Part shown: one piece after another, positions 3,414 through 47,687 of the stretch | How positions within the stretch are numbered: position 1 is the first letter of the stretch | Layout: every line of letters begins with the position of its first letter | Assembly: GCA_964187785.1 (NCBI GenBank) | Contig: OZ076421.1 | Coordinates: 48,980,001 to 49,044,000 of the forward strand | DNA from: Amphiscolops sp. MND2022 | Taxonomy: Eukaryota | Length of the DNA stretch: 64,000 nt | Reading direction: 5' to 3' | The notes under the pieces: model-generated | Databases searched by the model: none | Told to the model about the DNA's origin: nothing | The model's input: only the letters and a program-made list of their open reading frames with translations | Made by a program: the position numbers and the translations under genes

Positions 3414-4765
3414 CAAGTTCTATACATTGTGGCCGAAACAGTACTGAAAGCTAGTAATTTGAATTCTGCTGTTTGAGACCTTTGTAAATTTATGTAAAGT
3501 CATACAGATGAATAGTCAGCATATTTTGAACTACATGTAATGTTTGCTTCAATTTTGAACTACATGTAATTTTTGGTCTATGATTGCTATTCTAAATTGG
3601 CTAGGGATCACACTTAGTAAGGAGTTTTCAGGCCGGCTGCATAAACTTTGAATGGGGCACACTTAGTCAGAAGTACCATGAAATGTTCACCTGCCCGGTT
3701 CTAAAAGGCTCTTCAGAAAATGAATATTGTTTGTAGGGATCCTGACATGAATTCAATTACAGTTACTTTGCAGACTTCCATTTACTTTTTTTTCACTTGA
3801 TTGACAAGAAACAAACCAAAAACACGAATAATTTCCAACCACAAACATTTCGTTGAAAAGCATGACACTTGTTAACAACCAATAAGGCCATAAGATTAGA
3901 AGCTAATACTAATCGTTCCCTTTCAAGGCAGTTAGGCAAAAAGGATCGTGGGTTCGATTCCCGGACATGAAAAACTTTTCATAATTTGGAAATACTTCTT
4001 TGATTCCGTTAATTTAACTTTTAAAAGAGGCCTTCCTATATATGTTTAATGTTATTCACTTTTGTTGACAAATTTTTATTGTTCATTTTGACGTTTATTA
4101 TGCATATACGCTTGCTTTTGCCATTATTCTGGAGAAAAAACTCGATCGTATATAGCCATCGTATGACAAAACAATACAATATTGGTTATCCTTTCTTTTA
4201 TACTTTCAAAACAATCTATAAAGAAACTTTATATCCTTTAGTTATTGTCAATGCTATCAAAATTAGGGAAACGTGAACGTTATGACTATAAATATGGTTT
4301 CTGGCTAAAGACTTCAATTTAGCAGAAATTTTGTACCAATAGGAAATATTCTTACTTCCGGAAAAATGTGTCATTAGGGGTTCGGGAAGCAAAAAATTCA
4401 CGTCAAAAAACCAGCAACAGAGGCAGCAAGATAAACCACCCTCATAGTCTATTCTGGAAATGATACCTCAGATACCTGGAAATGAACTGAAACAGTTTTA
4501 GCAAAGTTTGAATAGCATCAAAAACGTTTTTGAGGCCAACATTTCAAGTGCAATAGTCAAATCGACTGAGCACTCTAATGAAAAAAGACCCGTAAGCCAG
4601 CGTTTGTCTTAGAATCTTGAAATTCTTGGCAAGATTCTGAGATCTTCCCGCTGATCAACCCTAAGATACCGAGAAATCCAAAACATCTGCCCAAAAATGG
4701 CCGTGTCTTAAAGTTTCTAGCAGGATCTTCAGATTTTTATGCTCTCCGATATTTCTCATATCGAC

Positions 4766-6169: not shown

Positions 6170-6905
6170 CTAGAGCCGCATATGCGGTAAAGGAGTCGGC
6201 TTAGGTTTTTTCTTCTGACTCGCCCCAATCCCAGTCATAACAATTTACTGGATTTGCACACATAGGACAATACTATGGTGTAGAAAATGACTGTAAAAAT
6301 TTCCCTTCGAATCGTATGAACAGTTTTAGCAAAAGTCAAAAAAAGTCGAAAAAAGCCGGTTTTTTGGCCATTTTTGGGTTAATTTAGGCTATGTTTCTCA
6401 CATCCCAGCAATATGAAATTGTTGAAATTACACACAAAGGACCGTAACATGGTGTAGAATGACTGTACAAAATTTCATTTGATTCGTATGGACAGTTTTT
6501 GAGAAAATAGAAACAAATCGAAAAATGAGTGTTTTTTGGCCATTTTTGGGCTAATTTTGGCTATGTTTCTCACATCCCAGCCATACGATTTTGATTCCAT
6601 TGCACACATAAGACTCTAAAATGCTGTAAAATAACTGTAGAAAATTTCGTTCGAATCGTATGGACAGTTTTTGAGAAAATCGAAAAAAAGTCGAAAAATC
6701 GCTATTTTTTGGCCATTTTTGTCTAATTTTGGCTATGTTTCTTACATCCCAACCATACGATTTTGATGCCTTTGCGCACGCTGGGGCCCCTTCGGGTGTA
6801 GAATGACTGTGCAAAATTTCGTGAAAATCGTATTGACAGGGAGAAAAAAAACAAAAAAAAACAGCACGATTGCATAAGTAGTCGGAAATTTTTTCCGACT
6901 TCTAA
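6170..6905 (-). mobile_element. Non-autonomous Helitron2/Helentron-type element (family S) carrying ~172-bp satellite monomers
   Basis: Interrupts pol inside an A-run with no TSD. Minus strand: TT-AGAAGTCGG plus 5' hairpin (plus 6879-6903), monomers, then CCGACTCCT (plus 6191-6199), hairpin CCGCATATGCGG (6176-6187) and CTAG (6170-6173). Confidence 0.75.
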
Positions 6906-9900
6906 AAAACGAAATTAAATTCGTCAGGTAAACTTGGGTCGATATCGAATACAACGGGAAAACAACAAAATTGCCAATCTTGATCCCAAAAAGAAGCGAC
7001 ATCACACCATTACTAGGTGTGATCTGGATGAAGCAATTACCAATCACCATTAACAAAATCCAATTGGACGAACCTATCAACCAATCGGAAGCCATCCACA
7101 CGAAATTCGGCAAGCTATTTGAAACAAACCATACAATCAAAAACATAGAAGTGAAATTTCCAACAAAACCAGGGTGTTACGCAATTCAATAAAAAGACAG
7201 ACCGATACCGTATCACTTACAAAAAGACGTAAAGAACGAACTGGACCAATTAATAAAATCCGGACATCTCGAACGACTAAAAACAGTCGAAGAAAATTGT
7301 TTCGTATCACCCGTGGTAATTAGGGTAAAAAAAGACAAAACCGTGAAAATCGCACTGGATGCCCGGAAACTCAATGACAGCTGTGTGAAGAAAAAAACAC
7401 ACATGCCAAATATGGAAGAATTACTGAACCAAATATCTGCCGACTTATCCTAGAATGACAGCGACCCAATCTGGATATCCGTAATAGAGAACAGGCGAAA
7501 CCAGAGCCGCATATGTGGTAAAGGAATCGGTTTAAGTCTTTTTCCTTCTGACTCGCTTCCGTTCGAATCGTATGAATAGTTTGTGAGAAAATCAAAAAAA
7601 TCGAAAAATGACTGTTTTTTTGGCCTTTTTTGGGCTAAATTTGGCTATGTTTCTCACTTCCCAGCCATACGAATTTAATGAAATTGCACATAAAGGACCA
7701 TAATATGGTGTAGAATTACTGTAGAAAATTTCGTTCGAATCGTAAGGACAGTTTTTGAGAAAATCGAAAAAAATCGAAAAATGACTGTTTTTTGGCCATT
7801 TCTGGGCTAATTTTGGCTATGTTTCTTACATCCCAGCCATACGATTTTGATGTCATTGCACATATAGGACTCTAATATGGTGTAGAATAAGTGTAGAAAA
7901 TTTTGTTCGAATCTTTTGGACAGTTTTTGAGAAAATAGAAAACCAGAGCCGCATATGCGGTAAAGGAGTCGGCTTAAGTCTTTTTCCTTCCGACTCGCTT
8001 TCGTTCGAACCGTATGAACAGTTTGTGAGAAAATTGAAAAAATCGAAAAAAGACTGTTTTTTTGGCCATTTTTGGGCTAAATTTGGCTATGTTTCTCACT
8101 TCCCAGCCATACGAATTTAATGAAATTGCACATAAAGGACCATAATATAGTTTAGAATGACTGTAGAAAATTTCGTTTCGAATCGTAAAGACAGTTTTTG
8201 AGAAAATCGAAAAAAATCGGAAAATGATTGTTTTTTGGCTATTTTTGGGCTAACTTTGGCTATGTTTCTTACATCCCAGCCTCACGATTTTGATGTCATT
8301 GCACATATAGGACTCTAATATGGTGTAGAATAAGTGTAGAAAATTTTGTTCGAATCTTTTGGACAGTTTTGGAGAAAATAGAAAACCAGAGCCGCATATG
8401 CGGTAAAGGAGTCGGCTTAAGTCTTTTTCCTTCCGACTCGCTTTCGTTCGAACCGTATGAACAGTTTGTGAGAAAATTGAAAAAATCGAAAAAAGACTGT
8501 TTTTTTGGCCATTTTTGGGCTAAATTTGGCTATGTTTCTCACTTCCCAGCCATACGAATTTAATGAAATTGCACATAAAGGACCATAATATGGTTTAGAA
8601 TGACTGTAGAAAATTTCGTTCGAATCGTAAGGACAGTTTTTGAGAAAATCGAAAAAAAATCGAAAAATGACTGTTTTTTGGCCATTTATGGGCTAATTTT
8701 GGCTATGTTTCTCACATCCCAGACATACAATTTTGATGCCATTGCACATATAGGACTCTAATATGGTGTAGAAAAACTGTAGAAAATTTCGTTCGAATCG
8801 TATGGACAGTTTTTGAGAAAATCGAAAAAAGTCAAAAAATGGCTGTTTTTTGGCCATTTTTGGGCTAATTTTGGCTATGTTTCTCACATCCCAGCCATAT
8901 GATTTTGATGTCATTGCACATATAGGACTCTAATATGGTGTAGAATAACTGTAGAAAATTTCGTTCGAATCGTATGGACAGTTTTTGAGAAAATAGAAAA
9001 CCACAGCAGCATATGCGGTAAAGGAGTCGGCTTAAGTCTTTTTCCTTCTGACTCGCTTTCGTTCGAACCGTATGAACAGTTTGTGAGAAAATCGAAAAAA
9101 TTGAAAAAGACTGTTTTTTTGGCCATTTTTGGGCTAAATTTGGCTATGTTTCTCACTTCCCAGCCATACGAATTTAATGAAATTGCACATAAAGGACCAT
9201 AATATTGTTTGAAAAGACTGTAGAAAATTTCGTTCGAATCGTATGGTCAGTTTTTGAGAAAATCGAAAAAAGTCGAAAAATGACTGTTTTTGGCCCTTTT
9301 TGGGCTAATTTTGGCTATGTTTCTCACATCCCAGCCATACGATATTAATGCCATTGCACATATAGGACTCTCATTTGGTGTAGAATAACTGTAGAAAATT
9401 TCGTTTGAATCGTATGGACAGTTCTTGAGAAAATCGAAAAAAGTCGAAAAGTGGCTGTTGTTTTGCCACTTTCGGGCTATTTTTGGCTACGTTTCTCACA
9501 TCCCAGCTATACGATTTTGATGCCTTTGCACACGCAGGGGCCCCTTTGGGTGTAGAATGACTGTGCAAAATTTCGTGAAAATCGTATGGACAGTTTTTGA
9601 GAAATTTGAAATTTTCATGAAAAGGTCGGGAGAAAAAAACAAAAAAAACAGCACGATTGCATAAGTAGTCGAAAATTTTTTCCGACTCCTAAAAATTGAA
9701 AAATGAGTGTTTTTGGGCCGTTTTTGAGCTAATTTTGGCTATGTTTCTCACATCCCAGCCATACGATTTTGGTTCCATTGCACATATAAGACTCTAAAAG
9801 GCTGTAGAATAACTGTAGAAAATTTCGTTCGAATCGTATGGACAGTTTTTGAGAAAATCAAAAAAAGTCAAAAAATCGCTGTTTTTGGCCATTTTTGGGC

Positions 9901-12790
9901 TTATTTTGGCTATGTTTCTCACATCCCAGCCATACTGTTTTGATACCATTGCACAAATAGGACTCTATTATGATGTAGAACGACTGTAGAAAAATTCGTT
10001 TGAATCGTATGGACAGTTTTTGAGAAAATTGAAAAAAGTCGGAAAATCGCTGTTTTTTGGCCATTTTTTGGCTAATTTTGGCTATGTTTTTCACATCCCA
10101 GTCAGACGATTTTTATGCCTTTGCACACGCAGGAGCCCCTTTGGGTGTAGATTGACTGTGCAAAAGTTCGTGAAAGTCGTATGGACAGTTTTTGAGAAAT
10201 TTGAAATTTTCATGAGAAGGTCGGGAGAACAAAACAGCACGATTGCATAAGTAGTCGAAAAATTTTTCCGACTCCTAAAAATCAACAGTTATTTCCGATT
10301 CTTGAAAAAATTTTTTGGCCCTGCCGATATACCAACGATTTTCCAAGAGAAAATAGACAGAACACTGGGCCACCAAACATCGGTTTGGTTGGACGACATT
10401 ACAGTTGTCACACGCGGAACAAAAGAAGAACACACCCGAAAACTATATTCGGTACTTACAAAACTAGAAAACGAGGGATACAGAGCAAGGAAGAAAAAAA
10501 ATCAAAATTCTACCAAAAAGAAACAATTTAGTTCAAACATACAATATCGCGAGACGGAATCAGACCAAACAAAGAAAAAACCGATGCGATAAAGAAATTA
10601 GAACCACCAACGAACTCCAAAACACTAAAGTCCTTTCTTGGAGCCATACAATTTTTTTGCAAAATTTATACCGAACCAGTCCGAGAAAATAGACAACATG
10701 AGAGAATTACTCAAGAAAGGGACAAAATGGAAATGGACCACTGACCGAAATTCAGACTTCCACAAAATAAAGCAAGAAATATCAACACTACCCTGCCTAG
10801 TACGTTACAACGGTAACAAGGACAACATCGTTACTACAGATGCGTGCAAAACCGGCTTAGGAGTAGCACTATGGCAAAAGCAAGGTAGCGGAGAGTTGAA
10901 ACAAATAGCCTTTATTAGCCGCTACTTAAACGTCGCCGAAAAGAAATATTCCATCGGAGAGTTAGAAATATTAGCCGTTGTTTGGGGCTTGGAAAGATTC
11001 CGATTTCACCTATACGGTAAACAAGTTCAACTATTCTCGGACCATCAAGCATTAGAACCCCTTCTAAAACGAAACAAGATGAATAAACAATTCAGTGCAT
11101 GGCTAACACAATGACTGGACAGATTGAATCACTTTGACATCTGCTTAAAACACACTGCCGGCAAAAAAATTGTATCCACGGACTTCATTACCCGAAACCC
11201 TACCGAAAATCCAGAACCGGAAAAAAACAACGAAGAGGAATTTGTTATTAACGCCATCGCGCAGCTAGCAACAGCAAACGCCCGAATATGACGGATTTTC
11301 AACCAATCAAACGGCGCGGATACGGCCAATGAAGCAAACATGCAGAATACGCGCTCGTTAATTGATACGCGACGCTATCAAACAAACAAAAACCATATTG
11401 ATTCAAATTACCGCATACAACAGTACTCATCCGAAAAACGACTCATCTGACAATGCATGTTTCTTTCGAATCGACGGACAATTACGCCACCAATGGGGTG
11501 CAGATGAAGATAATATGGCCATCGTAAACAAAAGAGACAAATCACCCGAAACTGCAGAGCTAGTGAGAAGGAGAGTGGAATTGGCGAGACCAGGCGCAAT
11601 GAGACCACACTGGAACAAAAACTTGGGCCGGGAAATCTACATAACAAGAAGACCCGAAGAAGATGAAAGACAAGAAATTGAACGAATTGACTTTCAACTA
11701 AAGAGAAAAATTAGAGAGTCTCACATTGGCGGAGGATGTTTCCAAAATTTCGGAGACGAAAGACCGCAAGGGCAAACCACAGAACAGCAACAACAGACTG
11801 AAAGAAATGAACCACCCGAGAACAAGAAACCAACAGGGACACAGAATCCACCATCTCTAACAACTCCGAAGAAGCGGTAGCGACACATGAACCCGGGACA
11901 TACCCAGCAATACCGGTTCAACAATACAGAGACGGACCAATCGAAGAAATCGCAATACACTATGTGAGAATCAACCGCGTAGTTGAAGAAAAAGCAAAAC
12001 GAAATAAACAACAGGCAGACAATGTCAGATCAGCAGAATTGGATTTCATGCTAGACTTGGACACAATAATTAAAGAAACGGCCGACGATCCTGATCTCAT
12101 TGAGCTGAACTGCTGTATCGAAGACATTAAAACGGAACAAATTCCGCACAACTAAAGAACCGTAGCCAAAAAAAACCCACCGCTGGGGCATCATAATGGT
12201 TGACGACCGCATTGTGGTACAAAAGCCACTACGATGCGCAGCCCTAACTGCATTACATTTCGGTCACCCCAGAATTTAAAAAATGTGCAGCGACGCAGCG
12301 ATATTCTGACGGCCGAAAAAGCGGAAGGCATTGAGAGGAAATCAAAAACCTGCACAGCCTGCCTCAACGCTGGTAAGAAATTAAAATTTCAAATACCACA
12401 AACCGAAAAATCAACAGATGAACCGCCAAAAACACCGAGCGAAGAACTTTAAAAAGATTTCACCGGAAACAACAGAAAACTATCAACTAATCCGCTCATT
12501 TTAATTGCGGTCAACAAGCACAGTCGTTGGCCAGTAGCAAAAATATGCAAAAATACAAACCACGAAACCGTAACCTCATTTTTGAATGAATACATAAAGG
12601 TATACGGAATACCGAAACAAATAAAATCGGATAAATGCCGCGCCTTTATCTCCAAAGAAGACAAAAAAATTTGTAAATCACAATGTATATAACGCGTATA
12701 CGGAACAGCTAATCTACATACCGGCAACGGATTAGTCGAACGAACTATCTAATCACTAAAGAATCGGATACTGGCGAACTTAGAAGACGA
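6906..12790 (+). pseudogene. pol block 1 (RT, RNase H, long linker, integrase N-half), interrupted at 7501-10278
   Basis: LDARKLND; PTIFQEKIDRTLGHQTSVWLDD; TTDACKTGLG..YSIGELEILAVVWGLERF (ORF 10638-11114); integrase HH/CC remnants at ~12230-12370. Confidence 0.9.
7501..10278 (-). repeat. Family S satellite array: ~172-bp monomers in a ~443-bp higher-order repeat, with nested element ends
   Basis: The GGCTATGTTT marker recurs at spacings of 172, 270, 173, 270, 173, 172, 269, 171, 172, 252, 171 and 172 bp. The 3' module starts at ~7501, 7942, 8385 and 9001. The 5' module ends at 9690 and 10276. Confidence 0.95.
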
Positions 12791-15700
12791 CCAATTGGAA
12801 GCCATTCACACGAATTTCAGCAAGCTATTTGAAACAAACCATACAATCAAAAATATAGAAGTGAAAATTCAAACAAAACCAGGATGTTACGCAATTCAAC
12901 AAAAAGACAGACCGATACCGTATCATTCACAAAAAGACGTAAAAAACGAACTGGACCAATTAATAAAATCCGGACATCTCGAACGACTAGAAAGAGTCGA
13001 AGAAGATTGTTTCGTATCACCCGTAGTAATCACGGTGAAAAAAGACAAAACAATGAAATCGCACTGGATGCTCGAAAACTCAATGACAGCTGTGTGAAGA
13101 GAAGAACACACATGCCAAATACGGAAGAATTACTGAACCAAATATCTGCCGAATTATCCAAGAATGACCGCAACCCAATCTGGATATCCGTAATAGATCT
13201 CGACTATGCATACCGACAGATGAAACTGGCACCCGAAACCAGTAAACATTGTAACTTCGCGATAACAGGTGAAAAAATCAACAGTTATTTCCGATTCCTA
13301 AAAAGGTTTTTTGGCCCTGCCGATATACCAACGATTTTCCAAGAGAAAATGGACATAACACTGTGCCACCAAACATCGATTTGATTGGACGACAGTATAG
13401 TTGTCACACGCGGAACAAAAGAAGAACACACCCGAAAATTATATTCAGTACTTACAAAACTAGAAAACGAGGGACACAGAGCAAGGAAGAAAAAATCAAA
13501 ATTCTCCCAAAAAGAAACCATATAGCTTAGACATACAGTATCGCAAGACGGACTCAGACCAAACAAAGAAAAAACCGATGCGATAAAGAAATTAGAACCA
13601 CCAACGAACTCCAAAACACTAAAGTCCTTTCTTGGAGCCATACAGTTTTTTTTGCAAAATTTATACCAAACCTGTCCGAGAAAACAGACAACATGAGACA
13701 ATTACTCATGAAAGGGACAAAATGGAAAAACCACTGACCGAAATTCAGACTTCCACAAAATAAAGCAAGAATTATCAACACTACCCTGCCTGGCACATTA
13801 CAACGGTAACAAGGACAACATCGTTATTGCAGATGCGTGCAAAACCGGTTTAGGAGTAGCACTATGGCGAAAACAAGGTAGCGGAGAATTAAAACCAAAA
13901 GCTTTTGCCAGACGCTACTTAAACGGCGCCGAAAACAATAATTCCATGGGAGAGTTGGAATAATTAGCCGTTGTTTGGGGCTTGGAAAGATTCCGATTTC
14001 ACCTATACGGTAAACAAGTTCAACTATTCTCGGACCATCAAGCATTAGAACCCCTTCTAAAACGAAACAAGATGAACAAACAATTCAGTGCATGGCTAAC
14101 ACAATGACTGGACAGATTGAATCACTTTGACATCTGCCTAAAAAACACTGCCGGCAAAGAAATTAAATTCACGGACTTCATTACCCGAAACCCTACTAAA
14201 AATCCAGAACCGGAAGAAAACTACGAAGAGGAATTTGTTATTAACGCCATCACGAAGCAAGCAACGGCAAACGCCCGAATAGGACGGATTTTCAACCAAT
14301 CAAACGGCGCGGATACGGCCAATGAAGCAAACATTCAGGATACGCGCACGCTAATTGATATGCGACGCTACCAAACAAACAAAAACCATATGGATTCAAA
14401 TTACCGCATACAGTACTCATACAATAACAGTACTCATCCGAAAACGACCTTTCAAAAATTAATAACAACGAGAACAATGCACGTTTCTTCCGAACCGACG
14501 GACAATTACGCCACCACTGGGGTGCAGATGACGATATTATGGCCATCGTAAACAAAAGAGACAAATCACCCGAAACTGCGGAGCTAGTGAGAAGGAGAGT
14601 GGAATTGGCGAGAACAGACGCAATGAGGCCACACTGAAATAAAAACCTGGGCCGGGAAATCTACATAACAAAAAGACCCGACGAAGATGAAAGAAGAGAA
14701 ATTAAACAAATTGACATTCAACTAAGGAGAAAAATTAGAGAGTCTCACACTGGGGGAGATATTTCCAAAATTTCGGAGACGAAATACCGCAAAGACAAAC
14801 CACAGAACAGCAACAACAAACTGACAGAAATGAACCGCCCGAGAACAAGAAACCAACAGGGACACAGAATCCACCACCTCTAACAACTCCGAAGAAGCGG
14901 TAGCGACACATGAACCCGGGACATACCCAGCAATACTGGTTCAACAATACAGAGACGGACCATTCGAAGAAATCGCAGTACACTATGTGAGAAACAACCG
15001 CGAAGTTGAAGAAAAAGCAAAACGAATTACAACAAGACAACAATGTCAGGTAGGTAGAATTGGATTTCAGGCTAGACTTGGAAACAATAATTAAAGAAAC
15101 GGCCGCCGACCCTGATCTCATCGAGTTGAACTGCTGTATCGAAGACAATAACACGGAACAAATTTCGCACAACAGAACCATAATCAAAAAATTAACCCAT
15201 CGCTGGGGCATCATAATGATTGAAGACCGCATTGTGGTACCAAAGTCACTACAATACGCAGCCCTAAGTGCTTTACATTTCGGTCATCCCGGAATTATCA
15301 AAATGTGCAGCGACGCAGCGGTATTCTGGTGGCCGAACATGCGACAAGACATTGCGAGGAAATCAAAAACCTGATCAGCCTGTCTCAACGCTCTTAAGAA
15401 TTTAAAATTTCAAATACCACAAACCGAAAAATCAAAAATTGAACCGCCAAAAACACCGGGCGAAGAAATCCAAATATATTTCACTGGAAATTTGCACAAC
15501 AAAAAACTATCACCCAATCCGCCCGTAATAATTGCGGTCGACAAGAACAGTTGATAGCCAGTAGCAAAAATATGCAAAAATACAAACCACAAAATCGTAA
15601 TTTCATTTTCGAACGAAAACATAAATGATAAATGTATACGGAGTACCGAAACAAATAAAATCGGATGAAGGCGGCGCCTTTATCTCTAGAGAAAACAAAA

Positions 15701-44234: not shown

Positions 44235-45258
44235 ACATTGAGGCATGGCCATATGGCACGTCGCTCTGCTTCGCTTCGCTCCTGCATTCAGGGCACTAGG
44301 GGTATGTGAACATATCTGACTACGTTATAAAAATTTCGATCCGAGTTGTTTCGATCCCATTCAAAAATTTGGTATTGTCGACCTGAGGACTAACTCTGAT
44401 TTTCGATCCCGTTCCTTCGACCTATTTCCACCCAAATTATGGTAGCAGAATTAAAAGAAACAAATCAGAAGTAGCTGGAGATCAAGAAGGAGATTGGAAT
44501 TTGCAAACAGAACAAGCGCCCCGAAGAAAGCGCATCAGAGAAAATATAGAGTGATCAGAACAAAGCCAGAGTACCTCTTTGGACACTAAAATGCCCACAG
44601 TAGGCAGTAAAAGAAACCATTATCATTAGGCGAACTTTACTACTTGTAAATCTGCATTTAATGCCCGTTTTGGTTCAACTAGAATTATATCTCTTTGCTC
44701 TGTAATCGTAACCATTTCACGTGCCTCATTGAGTTTCTGAATTGAGATTTGTCCTGGGTCCATTGAACTCTCCTTTTCATCATCTCGTTTCCTTTTTTTA
44801 TGTTTCCTCTGTTGGGTGGGTTTTTTTGTCTGCCGCCCGGGCTGGGGGCACATGACGAATAAAGAATTCGTTGATTGATGACGACAATTCATATCTCTGA
44901 TACTTTTATCAACAATTAGGCTTATTTATTGTTTTCTAAATGAAATAATCTCACCTGGTTTTGTTTGTTCTTCCACACGTTCTTTCTTGCACCAAGAGTG
45001 CTGGTCGCTTCTCACGTCATGCTACTCTCAATTCTCTCACTACTACTACTACTACTCATAAAGGAGACGTTGGGATCTCTCGACTGGCGGGCGGGAATAA
45101 CGTCTAAGGAATAACGTCTAATATGAAAACGGGAATAACGTCTGAATTTAAATCATTTTTCGGGAACAACGTCTAAAGTTTAAGACGTTATTCCCGTTTT
45201 TTTAGACGTTATTCCCGTTTTTTTAGACGTTATTCCCGTCATTTAGACGTTATTCCTG

Positions 45259-45546
45259 TTTTTGCACATGACGAAGTCAATGTGCATTGCAGTCCAGCTA
45301 AGAAAGTTTTTTTTCCACAATAGTCAACTTCATAATGAGCGCCTTTTAGACAAAAGTCAAAACCCCTGAGAGATTCGAACCTGCAGCCTCCCGATTGCAC
45401 GGCATAAGTGTTGACCACTGTGCCATAGGAACGTTATTGAACAAAGTTGAACTGTTGAATATATACGCATGCGATTAAAATAATATATATACGCATATTA
45501 AAATAATGTCTTCGTCATGTGTTGCGAAGCACCGCTTCGCCTATGT
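45259..45546 (+). mobile_element. Short Helitron2-type element (family T) containing a tRNA-like segment
   Basis: T-run, then CACATGACGAAG (45265-45276) within the 5' hairpin GCACATGAC-GAA-GTCAATGTGC. CTTCGTCATGTG (45510-45521), then hairpin GCGAAGC-ACC-GCTTCGC (45524-45540) and CTATGT. Confidence 0.7.
45364..45429 (-). promoter_or_regulatory. tRNA-derived Pol III A/B-box segment
   Basis: Minus strand: TGGCACAGTGG (A-box) ... GGTTCGAATC (B-box) at tRNA-like spacing. Acceptor stem is poor, so not called a tRNA. Confidence 0.55.
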
Positions 45547-45703
45547 GTAAAAACTGAACTCTGGAAGTAAAAATATTAATTTCTGAATGTTTTCACACAA
45601 ACTGACCAGCACAAAAATGGGTCGTGGCAAGGGTATTATTGTCTTTGGTACCCTCAATTCGAACAACAATTCAGAATATTTAATACTTACATACCACATA
45701 CCT

Positions 45704-45889
45704 AATGTGGGGAATATTCGGTGTATGCACGCTCGCCCTCACCGTCGCAAAGACCAGCTCCCACTACGATCGCTTCGCGATGTCCGTTCCCGCTAGGTCT
45801 TTGCTCCTGTTCGACCTCGCTTAGCAAGATGGAACATAAGCGGCCCCAAGGGGCCGCAGGGCACTAGAGGGAATGGAGACATATCCGAG
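45704..45889 (+). repeat. Family H2 copy
   Basis: Inverted copy of 43905-44091. Contains hairpin GCGGCCCC-AA-GGGGCCGC followed by AGGGCACTAG. Confidence 0.85.
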
Positions 45890-47687
45890 ACATGTTTTAT
45901 ACTTTGAATCACTTTATAGCATCAGATCTTGATTGACCTGAATTTTCCCAATTTTAGACGTTCTTCCCGTTTCCTAGACGTATTTAAATTATTTTTGGAT
46001 ATTTTAGGCGTTTTTCCCGATTTTAAACGTTATTCCTGTTTTTCAGACGTATTCTGACGATTTTTTGTTTTTAAACGTTTTTCTGTAATTTTTTAGACGT
46101 TATTCCCGTTTTTCAGACGTATTTTGACAATTTTTCTGTATTTTAAACGTTTTTCTGTAAATAAGACGTTATTCCCGTCTTCAGGTTTAGACGTTATTCC
46201 TCTTTTTAGACGTTATTCCTCTGTTTAGACGTTATTCCCGTTTTTTAGACGTTATTTCTCTGTTTAGACGTTATTCCCGTTTTTTTAGACGTTTTTCCCT
46301 AATATTTCAGTTTAGATGTTATTCCTTTAGACGTTATTCCCGGTGGACCTTTAGACGTTATTCCTTAGACGTTATTCCCTCCTCTACTCTCGACTTCCCT
46401 TCAATGCTCGAACCGCGTGGACTGTACCGAACTGATGGCAAACGCCCAGACGGTGTTACCATGATTCCTTGATAAATGGGTAAACAGCTGATGTGGGATT
46501 TCACGGTTGTGGATGCTCTTGCACCCAGTCGCCTGAATCAAGGCTCTTTATGCCACCCGGGAACCACCGCTACCGAGGATGAAGCGCGTAAAATTGAGAA
46601 GTATCGCGAATTAATAGACAATGGATACATTTTTCAGCCCGTGGCCTTGGAAGTACAGGGCTCTTTAGGCGAGAGCAGTGAAATTTTCATCACGCGTCTC
46701 TGTAAAATGCTGTGTCGTTCGCACGACGATCAACGAGCTGGCAGCTTTTTGAAGCAACGGATTTCAATGGCTCTTCAGATCGGCAATGCGGCCTGTGTTC
46801 TAGGAACTGTGAGCGACAAAGATGCGTTCGAAGAAATTTGTTACATATAGCCTAATTTTTTTGACCTTTTCATCATAGCAGCTTTAGAAAAAATAGTGGC
46901 TGGTTTGAGTAGTTTGTTGGTTGTTTTTTTTTGTTACTGTTCTACTGGTATGGGGTTCCCTACTTTCGTTGCAGACCACGGGTGTGTGTCTTCTCCCCCC
47001 AACATGATGATACACATGGCACTTGATCGATGACGAAGATCCATGATATCTGATAGAACGAAAAAAAAACTTCCAGCCTAGCCTCGTCAGATGTCAAACG
47101 GTCGTCTCAAATCTTTCCAATCGCTGTTGCTTTTTAACAAGCCCATCACAGCAATTAAACTGTCGAATACTAATCAATAGTTGCACAATTTCCGGTATAT
47201 TAATTTCACTTTGTTCATTGACAAATGGTCGATTCTATATTTTCAGGCGATGATTGTTGTTCTTGGCTGATGGATGACATTGAAAGATTCTGCGAAATTA
47301 CTGGTTAGTATTTTTCGAACTGAAAATAAATGTAATTTTTTCAAATGGCCAGCTTTTTTATTTATCTCGCGCCTGGCAACGTTACTGGCTGATGTTTCTG
47401 GGTCACCAGTGTCAAACTTTGGAATTCACTCCGCGACAAAAACAAGCGGTGGCTTCCTTTGATACCTTAAAATCGAAGCTGAAAACTTACCTCTTCTTCA
47501 AGCTTTGTTTTAAAAATAGCATTACATCGTCATCGTGAATGTTCCTAGCGGAAACTATTTTGGACAATGTTGAACTTCAGATTACGGAAGAATAAAAGCG
47601 AAAAGACAACTTAATTTTTTTACTCGAATTGATGCTTACGGAGGTGCCTTTCCTGTAGCCAAGGCCTGGTAGTCAATTTTTGATTAA

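Follow-up and report, generated by a model that had tools for sequence, protein, structure and literature searches.

A nested Helentron-like element with repeated junction units in the genome of Amphiscolops sp. MND2022

Internal repeats carried by Helentrons are known to expand into satellites in Drosophila and oysters (PMC4067079, PMC7492417, PMC13553610). The HINE group of these elements is recognized by a 5′ subterminal repeat, located 2–4 nt from the terminus and complementary to the 3′ one, and by a palindrome ~8–35 bp from the end (PMC4067079). HINEs or DINE-1-like elements with central repeats (PMC4067079), including Cg_HINE of the Pacific oyster (PMC7492417) and DINE-TR1 of Drosophila virilis (Dias et al. 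2015), are the closest described counterparts of the repeat family analyzed here. The family occupies positions 6170–10278 of a 64,000-nucleotide stretch of the Amphiscolops sp. MND2022 genome (assembly GCA_964187785.1, contig OZ076421.1, positions 48,980,001–49,044,000 of the forward strand), hereafter the window. One element of the family is nested in another, and the segment running from a terminus to the nest junction is repeated. Very probably, a HINE inserted into a copy of its own family and the junction was then duplicated by ectopic exchange between the copies.

The locus resembles the double-insertion model (McGurk and Barbash 2018, PMC5932611), in which a site preference pairs direct copies, unequal exchange expands them, and the junction enters the repeat unit. 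A direct-orientation nest within one family and a recombinant unit, termed U2, are both found here. In the model, however, target-site duplication recreates the target and yields head-to-tail full elements, whereas no such duplication is seen in the window. The second copy instead lands within the internal repeat of the first; a terminus with a few monomers therefore makes up the unit, and the place of the nest determines the period. Complex 'shuffled' loci of Helitrons and satellites in Crassostrea gigas (Tunjic-Cvitanic et al. 2021, PMC8268682), in the summary given by PMC12628747, similarly contain truncated or tandemized parts inside elements of the same kind, with termini and satellite-like monomers mixed. 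The present locus differs from that description in its base-by-base legibility, which extends to the exact point of nesting, to an empty site, and to the recombinant unit. No open-access paper was found that states that the monomer supplies the target, or that shows a terminus-plus-monomers unit arising by self-nesting.

The nest and its junction units

Region 6170–10278 contains two insertions of the family within a decayed retrotransposon pol gene (Table 1). On the + strand, a family member is sequentially composed of a 58-bp end module (CCAGAGCCGCATATGCGGTAAAGGAGTCGG...GACTCGC), ~3.5 monomers of 172 bp, and a second end module (...GCACGATTGCATAAGTAGTCGAAAATTTTTTCCGACTCCTAA). The element's own strand is the minus strand of the window, with the first module at its 3′ end and the second at its 5′ end. 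The solo copy is 92% identical over its entire length to a 770-bp family consensus, which was built from 13 full-length genomic copies.

The second insertion is an array at 7501–10278. A pattern search for the first end module (CCAGAGCCGCATATGCGG...) gives five matches in the 64 kb, at 6175, 7506, 7948, 8391, and 9006, against none expected. The corresponding modules start at 6170, 7501, 7943, 8386, and 9001. The other end module (..GCACGATTGCATAAGTAGTCG..CTCCTAA) is present in three copies that end at 6905, 9692, and 10278. In total, the array holds four 3′-end modules and two 5′-end modules. Its 3′-end modules are spaced by 442, 443, and 615 bp, in agreement with the values of ~441, 443, and 616 bp given in a sequence-only reading of this DNA that preceded the analysis. 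Tandem Repeats Finder (TRF) detects a 443-bp period at 7498–8828 (3.0 copies, 94% matches), overlying the 172-bp period.

The normal boundary between an M1-type and an M2-type monomer reads GAGAAAATAGAAAAAAATCGAAAAATGAGTG and lies at consensus 336–366. The solo copy contains this motif unsplit, as GAGAAAATAGAAACAAATCGAAAAATGAGTG at 6501–6531. In the array it is split. GAGAAAATAGAAAA abuts CCAGAG at 7929–7948 and 8372–8391 and a CCACAG variant at 8987–9006. At 9686–9709, CTCCTAAAAATTGAAAAATGAGTG joins the second end module to the remainder of the split monomer, with the boundary at 9692/9693. The unsplit motif at ~6500–6530 and the split junctions had been noticed in the sequence-only reading, and both are borne out.

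The inner element aligns end to end with consensus 1–58 and 136–770 at 91% identity. It is preceded by ...GAGAAAATAGAAAA and followed by AAATTGAAAAATGAGTG, the two halves of consensus 336–366. The part to its right aligns to consensus 348–770 and 176–770 at 89% identity, and in a monomer tree the first monomer of this part groups with consensus M2, which normally follows the split boundary. The A count across the nest (4 + 5 = 7 + 2) matches an insertion without target duplication, and the inner and outer copies share one orientation. A complete element thus sits in the A7 run at a monomer boundary of an outer copy from its own family. The earlier proposal that an element had inserted into an A-rich site of its own monomer is thereby upheld.

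Three units, U1 to U3, precede the inner element, and the left edge of U1 adjoins the host retrotransposon. Their junction monomers (U1_m2, U2_m2, and U3_m3) form a supported clade in the monomer tree. The variant GATGTCATTG occurs in the window only in these three monomers, and elsewhere in three of 68 cases, the other 65 having the usual form. In addition, the last monomers of U1, U2, and U3 have an ATAG boundary in common; one of the other subfamily copies surveyed has ATAG, and none has it at that position. The clade, the ATAG boundary, and the rare GATGTCATTG indicate that the three junctions are copies of one junction rather than three insertions.

U2 is a mosaic of its neighbors. It agrees with U3 at all 13 informative sites in alignment columns 2–216 and with U1 at all 11 in columns 267–438, with no discordant site. 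By chance, 24 such sites would be divided by one clean breakpoint with a probability of 2/C(24,11), or ~8e-7. The proximal 198 bp of U2 and U3 are identical; otherwise the units are distinguishable, with 21–25 differences per ~441 aligned columns (94–95% alike). The mosaic demonstrates at least one ectopic exchange between units, whether by crossover or by gene conversion. Tandem amplification of the junction unit, also proposed earlier, is supported by the junction-monomer clade, the rare GATGTCATTG, and the clean U3/U1 recombination in U2. The distal ~100 bp of U2 differ from U1 at one site.

The elements are 9–11% diverged from the consensus, and U1, U3, and the inner copy differ mutually by 5–9%. 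Copies of the host retrotransposon are ~7% apart. Given the divergence from the consensus and between units, the nest is old and has since undergone at least one exchange; it is not a recent event.

Table 1. Features of the window; positions count from its first nucleotide
Feature	Position	Strand	Composition
Solo uninterrupted copy (putative HINE)	6170–6905	−	On + strand: 58-bp end module, M0-M1-M2-M3, other end module
Unit U1	7501–7942	−	End module (putative Helentron 3′ end), partial monomer, M1-type, M2-type ending in GAGAAAATAGAAAA
Unit U2, recombinant	7943–8385	−	Proximal ~216 bp as U3, distal ~180 bp U1-like
Unit U3	8386–9000	−	U1 layout plus one extra M2-type monomer, 615 bp; ends in GAGAAAATAGAAAA
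Inner element, complete (putative HINE)	9001–9692	−	Subfamily without consensus 59–135; both termini present
Right part of outer element	9693–10278	−	AAATTGAAAAATGAGTG, three monomers, putative Helentron 5′ end module
Decayed LTR (long terminal repeat)-type retrotransposon pol, host of both insertions	6907–7500, resuming 10279–11114	+	Reverse transcriptase and RNase H in the resumed part
Paralogous empty site in second host-retrotransposon copy (12790–13695)	13268–13284	+	GGTGAAAAAATCAACAG, A6 run intact

The element family and its insertion site

The family displays the features of HINEs. Its 5′ end, as read on the minus strand, is TT-AGGAGTCGG; the complementary CCGACTCCT is subterminal at the 3′ end, and both sequences are conserved in 30 copies and in the consensus. 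The 3′ subterminal repeat is followed by a hairpin, CCGCATATGCGG, 6 nt before the CTCTGG end (8 nt counting the two boundary T's). On the + strand, AA flanks one side and AAA the other in 29 of 30 copies. Counting of A's places the element limits at CCAGAG...CTCCTAA on the + strand, or TTAGGAG...CTCTGG from 5′ to 3′ on the element's own strand; the ends lie inside homopolymer runs, and the boundary can be fixed no further than by this count. The family termini are TTAGGAGTCGG... and ...CCGCATATGCGGCTCTGG.

The array provides an example of the target. Its occupied host site reads GGCGAAA/array/AAATCAACAG, an insertion inside an A run, and the empty site in the second retrotransposon copy has the run intact. 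The A's again add up: 3 + 5 = 6 + 2, the empty-site A6 plus the element's two A's. The counts at the host site and at the nest therefore both indicate that no target duplication occurred. The host pol is identified by Pfam RVT_1 and RT_RNaseH_2 matches on open reading frames at 10302–11114, and at least 2,249 candidate copies of this retrotransposon are present genome-wide. The array-bearing host copy lacks ~65 bp present in the paralogue (window 7489–7500 compared with 13198–13274), and the missing segment ends 12 bp upstream of the array insertion site.

Approximately 630 of the 770 bp of the consensus are 172-bp monomers, so that the element is non-coding with central tandem repeats. An A6–A7 tract (+ strand) is present in every monomer boundary and an A10 tract in the 5′ end module. 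The subterminal inverted repeats, the 3′ hairpin, the T-rich target without duplication, and the non-coding repeat-bearing body are all as in HINEs. We therefore classify the family, from its sequence features, as a putative ~770-bp non-autonomous Helentron, that is, a DINE-1-like HINE. A canonical Helitron (Helitron1) was considered and rejected: the 5′ end is TTAGG rather than TC, and integration is into T/A homopolymer runs rather than an AT site. The CTGG at the 3′ end of the element agrees with the CTRR of canonical Helitrons and is not diagnostic by itself.

Like described HINEs, the element is short and protein-less, with a 5′ subterminal repeat 2 nt from the end that is complementary to the 3′ one, followed by the palindrome. 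Likewise, it has boundary T runs, an oligo-T or TT target without target duplication, and a central satellite-like array that makes up most of its length. Unlike them, it has position-specific monomers (M0–M3), and its own monomers carry the preferred target, with frequent direct self-nesting. Its sequence shows no relation to any described family found, and a literal literature search with the terminal sequences returned no matches.

At least 40 near-full-length relatives were scored genome-wide. End-module cores number at least 3,582 in the 1.07-Gb assembly, against 8,955 cores of the monomer, or ~2.5 monomers per end. This ratio indicates that the 172-bp repeat is transposon cargo and not a free satellite. 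The starting material is thus the internal repeat of a dispersed, apparently Helentron-type transposon, in place of the monomeric satellite assumed in the sequence-only reading.

That reading had seen in the array a snapshot of how a higher-order repeat (HOR) is born from such a satellite. The units are indeed more alike (94–95%) than the internal monomers, whose types fall into separate, well-supported clades, and the predicted clustering of monomers by position is observed. However, the M1, M2, and M3 types are family-wide, already form the same position-specific pattern in every solo element, and predate the event. With units 5–6% apart and elements ~9–11% from the consensus, the structure is not fresh. 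Nor is it a long homogeneous array: three partial units beside an inner element make a small duplication cluster rather than an established HOR array, and a locus on C9, described below, comes closer. To speak of an HOR being born from a monomeric satellite is therefore an overstatement.

TRF also reports several short arrays at window 45094–46378, on a TTTAGACGTTATTCC(C) motif with periods of 14–70 bp; these are unrelated to the family.

Self-nests elsewhere in the genome

Modules were located by blastn-short, and nests were found by pattern searches for both junction types together with module maps. Nests at the same A7 boundary, with different flanks, are present at four other loci (C8:45.46, C1:77.10, C3:73.07, and C4:4.37 Mb). 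At the A7-boundary loci, the inner copies resemble one another no more than random family members do, and their mutual distances are at least as large as those from the consensus, which indicates that these nests are independent insertions. Homologous A6 runs of other boundaries are nested on C5, C9, C2, and C10. In the search for monomer-boundary junctions, nine matches in direct orientation were found against one doubtful match in inverted orientation. A recurrence of the junction at other loci, proposed as a check in the sequence-only reading, is thus seen for the A7-boundary nest; no other locus in the genome pattern search has the structure of the window array. The idea that the composite moved as a unit was rejected for the window array on this ground.

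The number of nested loci follows the length of the A run: 33 for A10, five for A7, and 2 + 2 for the A6 runs. The A10 run of the 5′ end module accounts for 45 self-nest junctions at its 33 loci, and eight of these loci contain two to five identical junctions at a spacing of 0.6–2.4 kb. The A10 junction (GGTCGGGAGAAAAA.. followed by CCAGAG) is repeated with an equal A count per locus at C12:19485178–19489266 and C5:13916553–13919545. Further repeated A10 junctions lie at C1:55719023/55719615, C1:97207521/97208119, C2:93247189/93248173, C3:19402732/19404059, C11:11033037/11035481, and C12:25120620/25121242. The loci with repeated A10 junctions are probably further composite arrays.

A runs of at least 6 occur at 3.8 per kb in this window. 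On that density, which is taken from one window, a rough expectation is ~10 self-nests per ~3,600 insertions, against at least 40 observed. The observed number is within a few-fold of the expectation, and a modest excess over the oligo-T preference may exist. Since five loci share this nest site, the ATAG boundary was considered as a possible sequence hot spot. The idea was set aside, because the inner copies there are not especially alike, and because the nest frequency tracks A-run length and is within a few-fold of the rough expectation.

Duplicated junctions of both polarities are found. On C8, a 173-bp unit reaching from the end module to the junction is duplicated, and the end module of the second copy has the variant of the inner element. 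On C5, the junction on the 5′-end (R) side is duplicated, with 427 bp between copies. The largest array lies at C9:52768813–52777088 (loci L049–L050), where two 3′-end modules precede ten 5′-end modules. After nine of these comes one and the same monomer junction (CTCCTAAAAA/GTCGAAAAATGGCTG); the last of the ten adjoins the flank. Five of its units measure 763–765 bp and are identical at 762–766 of 767 columns (~99.6%); the others, of 427, 584, 1268, and 1439 bp, differ by whole monomers. The C9 locus depicts a young composite array much better than the window does.

Other arrangements of modules were also observed. On C1, end-module cores recur at regular spacings of ~1.73 kb (and ~1.6–1.75 kb) at C1:30110330–30113824 and C1:19591623–19594981, which suggests tandem units exceeding one element. 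At L046:4098–7722 (C1:77.10 Mb), a simple A7-boundary nest lies inside a tandem duplication of ~2.6 kb that also takes in flanking sequence outside the element; its left flank is found at 4098 and again at 6700, and the second copy of the junction is 2557 bp downstream. At L017:2383–2530 (C5:40.84 Mb), three 5′-end modules are stacked ~50 bp apart, each after an A run, as expected of serial nesting in the A10 run. Loci L054:4493–5096 (C10:44.28 Mb) and L055:4572–5357 (C2:96.08 Mb) have a common layout and different flanks. Each consists of one 5′ end and two 3′-end modules 96–97 bp apart, joined at GAGAAAATCGAA(A) followed by CCAGAG. This double-terminator composite may have transposed by bypassing its first 3′ end. 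The host repeat at L054 is the same as for copies at L003 and L006.

Origin of the array and its meaning

As with other HINEs, integration of the element is into oligo-T tracts, in one orientation and without target duplication. As its own monomer boundaries and 5′ end module contain oligo-T on its strand, self-nesting is to be expected, always head-to-tail. In the window, a complete element entered the A7 run at a monomer boundary of the outer copy. The outer-left and the inner-left part both open with the same end module followed by the same monomers, so that the nest set two direct repeats side by side. Ectopic homologous exchange, by unequal crossing-over between sister chromatids or homologues or possibly by gene conversion, would have duplicated the segment from end module to junction and produced the three unit lengths. 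For U2, pairing of U3 on one chromatid with U1 on the other, followed by a crossover, would yield U1, a hybrid with a U3 proximal and a U1 distal part, and U3. The first duplication, giving U1 and U3, is proposed by analogy; the extra monomer of U3 is as expected from out-of-register pairing. We infer the order of the earlier duplications, and exchange rather than a transposase as the maker of the units.

Several points weigh against this account. Eight of the nine private changes of U2 cluster around the breakpoint (columns 206–341; window 8148–8285). This cluster is not accounted for by a plain crossover and may stem from a lost third donor or from error-prone repair synthesis. The mosaic could also stem from gene conversion of an older duplicate, not from the crossover that created the unit, and more than one unit could be the original outer-left part. 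The family is not linked to an autonomous Helentron with the same termini, for which no dedicated search was made. Finally, no unitig of the public runs spans a whole unit, and the copy number rests on the assembly.

An assembly artefact, either repeat-induced expansion or mis-joined reads from copies of an abundant family, is nevertheless the least probable of the explanations considered. The family has thousands of copies, U2 equals U3 over 198 bp, and the public runs are stored as short unitigs whose longest pieces on the array are ~60–90 nt; they cover ~40% of the sampled words and include many alternative joints to paralogues. Yet the units are otherwise distinguishable, one unitig (7461–7546) bridges the left junction between host and array, and exact unitigs cover 8974–9031 and 10257–10340. 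Runs X3 and X4 contain exact unitigs with locus-specific variants, such as CCACAGCAGC at 9001–9010. The structure is also coherent, with two halves of one boundary and a matching A count. Serial nesting of the Russian-doll kind, in which three or four elements successively entered the A7 site of the previous one and surplus right parts were later deleted, is very unlikely. It would agree with the repeated and independent use of A-run sites, seen in the five loci with different flanks nested at one boundary, and the stack at L017 resembles it in an A10 run. Under this scheme the two termini should be equally numerous, whereas their counts in the window array are four and two. It also requires the rare ATAG boundary and the rare GATGTCATTG before the site in every successive element, and it leaves the U3/U1 mosaic of U2 unexplained.

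Amplification by the transposase, with the product integrated as one piece, is a fainter possibility still. The terminator could be bypassed with subsequent re-initiation, or a circle without a terminator could be copied in rolling-circle fashion, as modelled by Xiong, Dooner and Du (2016) according to the summary in PMC12628747. Documented tandem arrays of truncated Helitrons are ascribed to rolling-circle replication (PMC12628747), and like those in that summary the window array consists of tandem units that each pair one Helitron-type terminus with internal sequence, and it has unequal numbers of 5′ and 3′ ends. The entire array lies in a host A run like one insertion, and the C10 and C2 loci share their double-3′-end layout in different flanks, as if a composite had moved. 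As summarized there, however, the model gives many 5′ ends, a single 3′ end, and one event. The C9 array has this polarity, and rolling-circle amplification is possible for it. The window shows the reverse, with diverged units of which one is a recombinant of its neighbors, pointing to stepwise events in situ. Furthermore, at its junction an exact terminus meets an oligo-T tract internal to a monomer, the mark of integration and not of circle recombination, and the pattern search found the structure at no other locus. Each nest leaves direct repeats to either side of its junction: the end module and first monomers are common to the left parts, the last monomers and the other end module to the right parts. 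Exchange within the left pair would multiply 3′ ends, the pattern of the window and of C8; within the right pair it would multiply 5′ ends, the pattern of C5 and C9. The occurrence of both polarities thus favors recombination over rolling-circle amplification.

Self-insertion followed by ectopic exchange makes the locus a clear small instance of a known process, double insertion of a transposable element with unequal exchange, and not a new principle. It brings that process together with the Helentron-borne repeats and the nested, tandemized loci described before. The conversion of transposon repeats into structured arrays is usually inferred from end products. Here, together with the C9, C8, and C5 loci, the intermediates are on view at base resolution: the exact nest site, the empty site, the junction within a longer unit, and a visible recombinant. 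The locus also suggests a simple reason for the recurrence: the oligo-T target of the element occurs, correctly oriented, within its monomers. We propose, tentatively and with somewhat less than even confidence, that self-nesting is systematic and always head-to-tail, and that each nest forms direct repeats which recombination readily enlarges to composite units of one terminus and monomers. The family would thereby have an intrinsic and recurrent path by which cargo repeats become higher-order tandem arrays. If so, no fewer than 40 loci would display this path at various stages, the simplest being a single nest and the most advanced the young array of nine units. The locus is thus a clean worked example, and the family is suited to a genome-wide or population survey.

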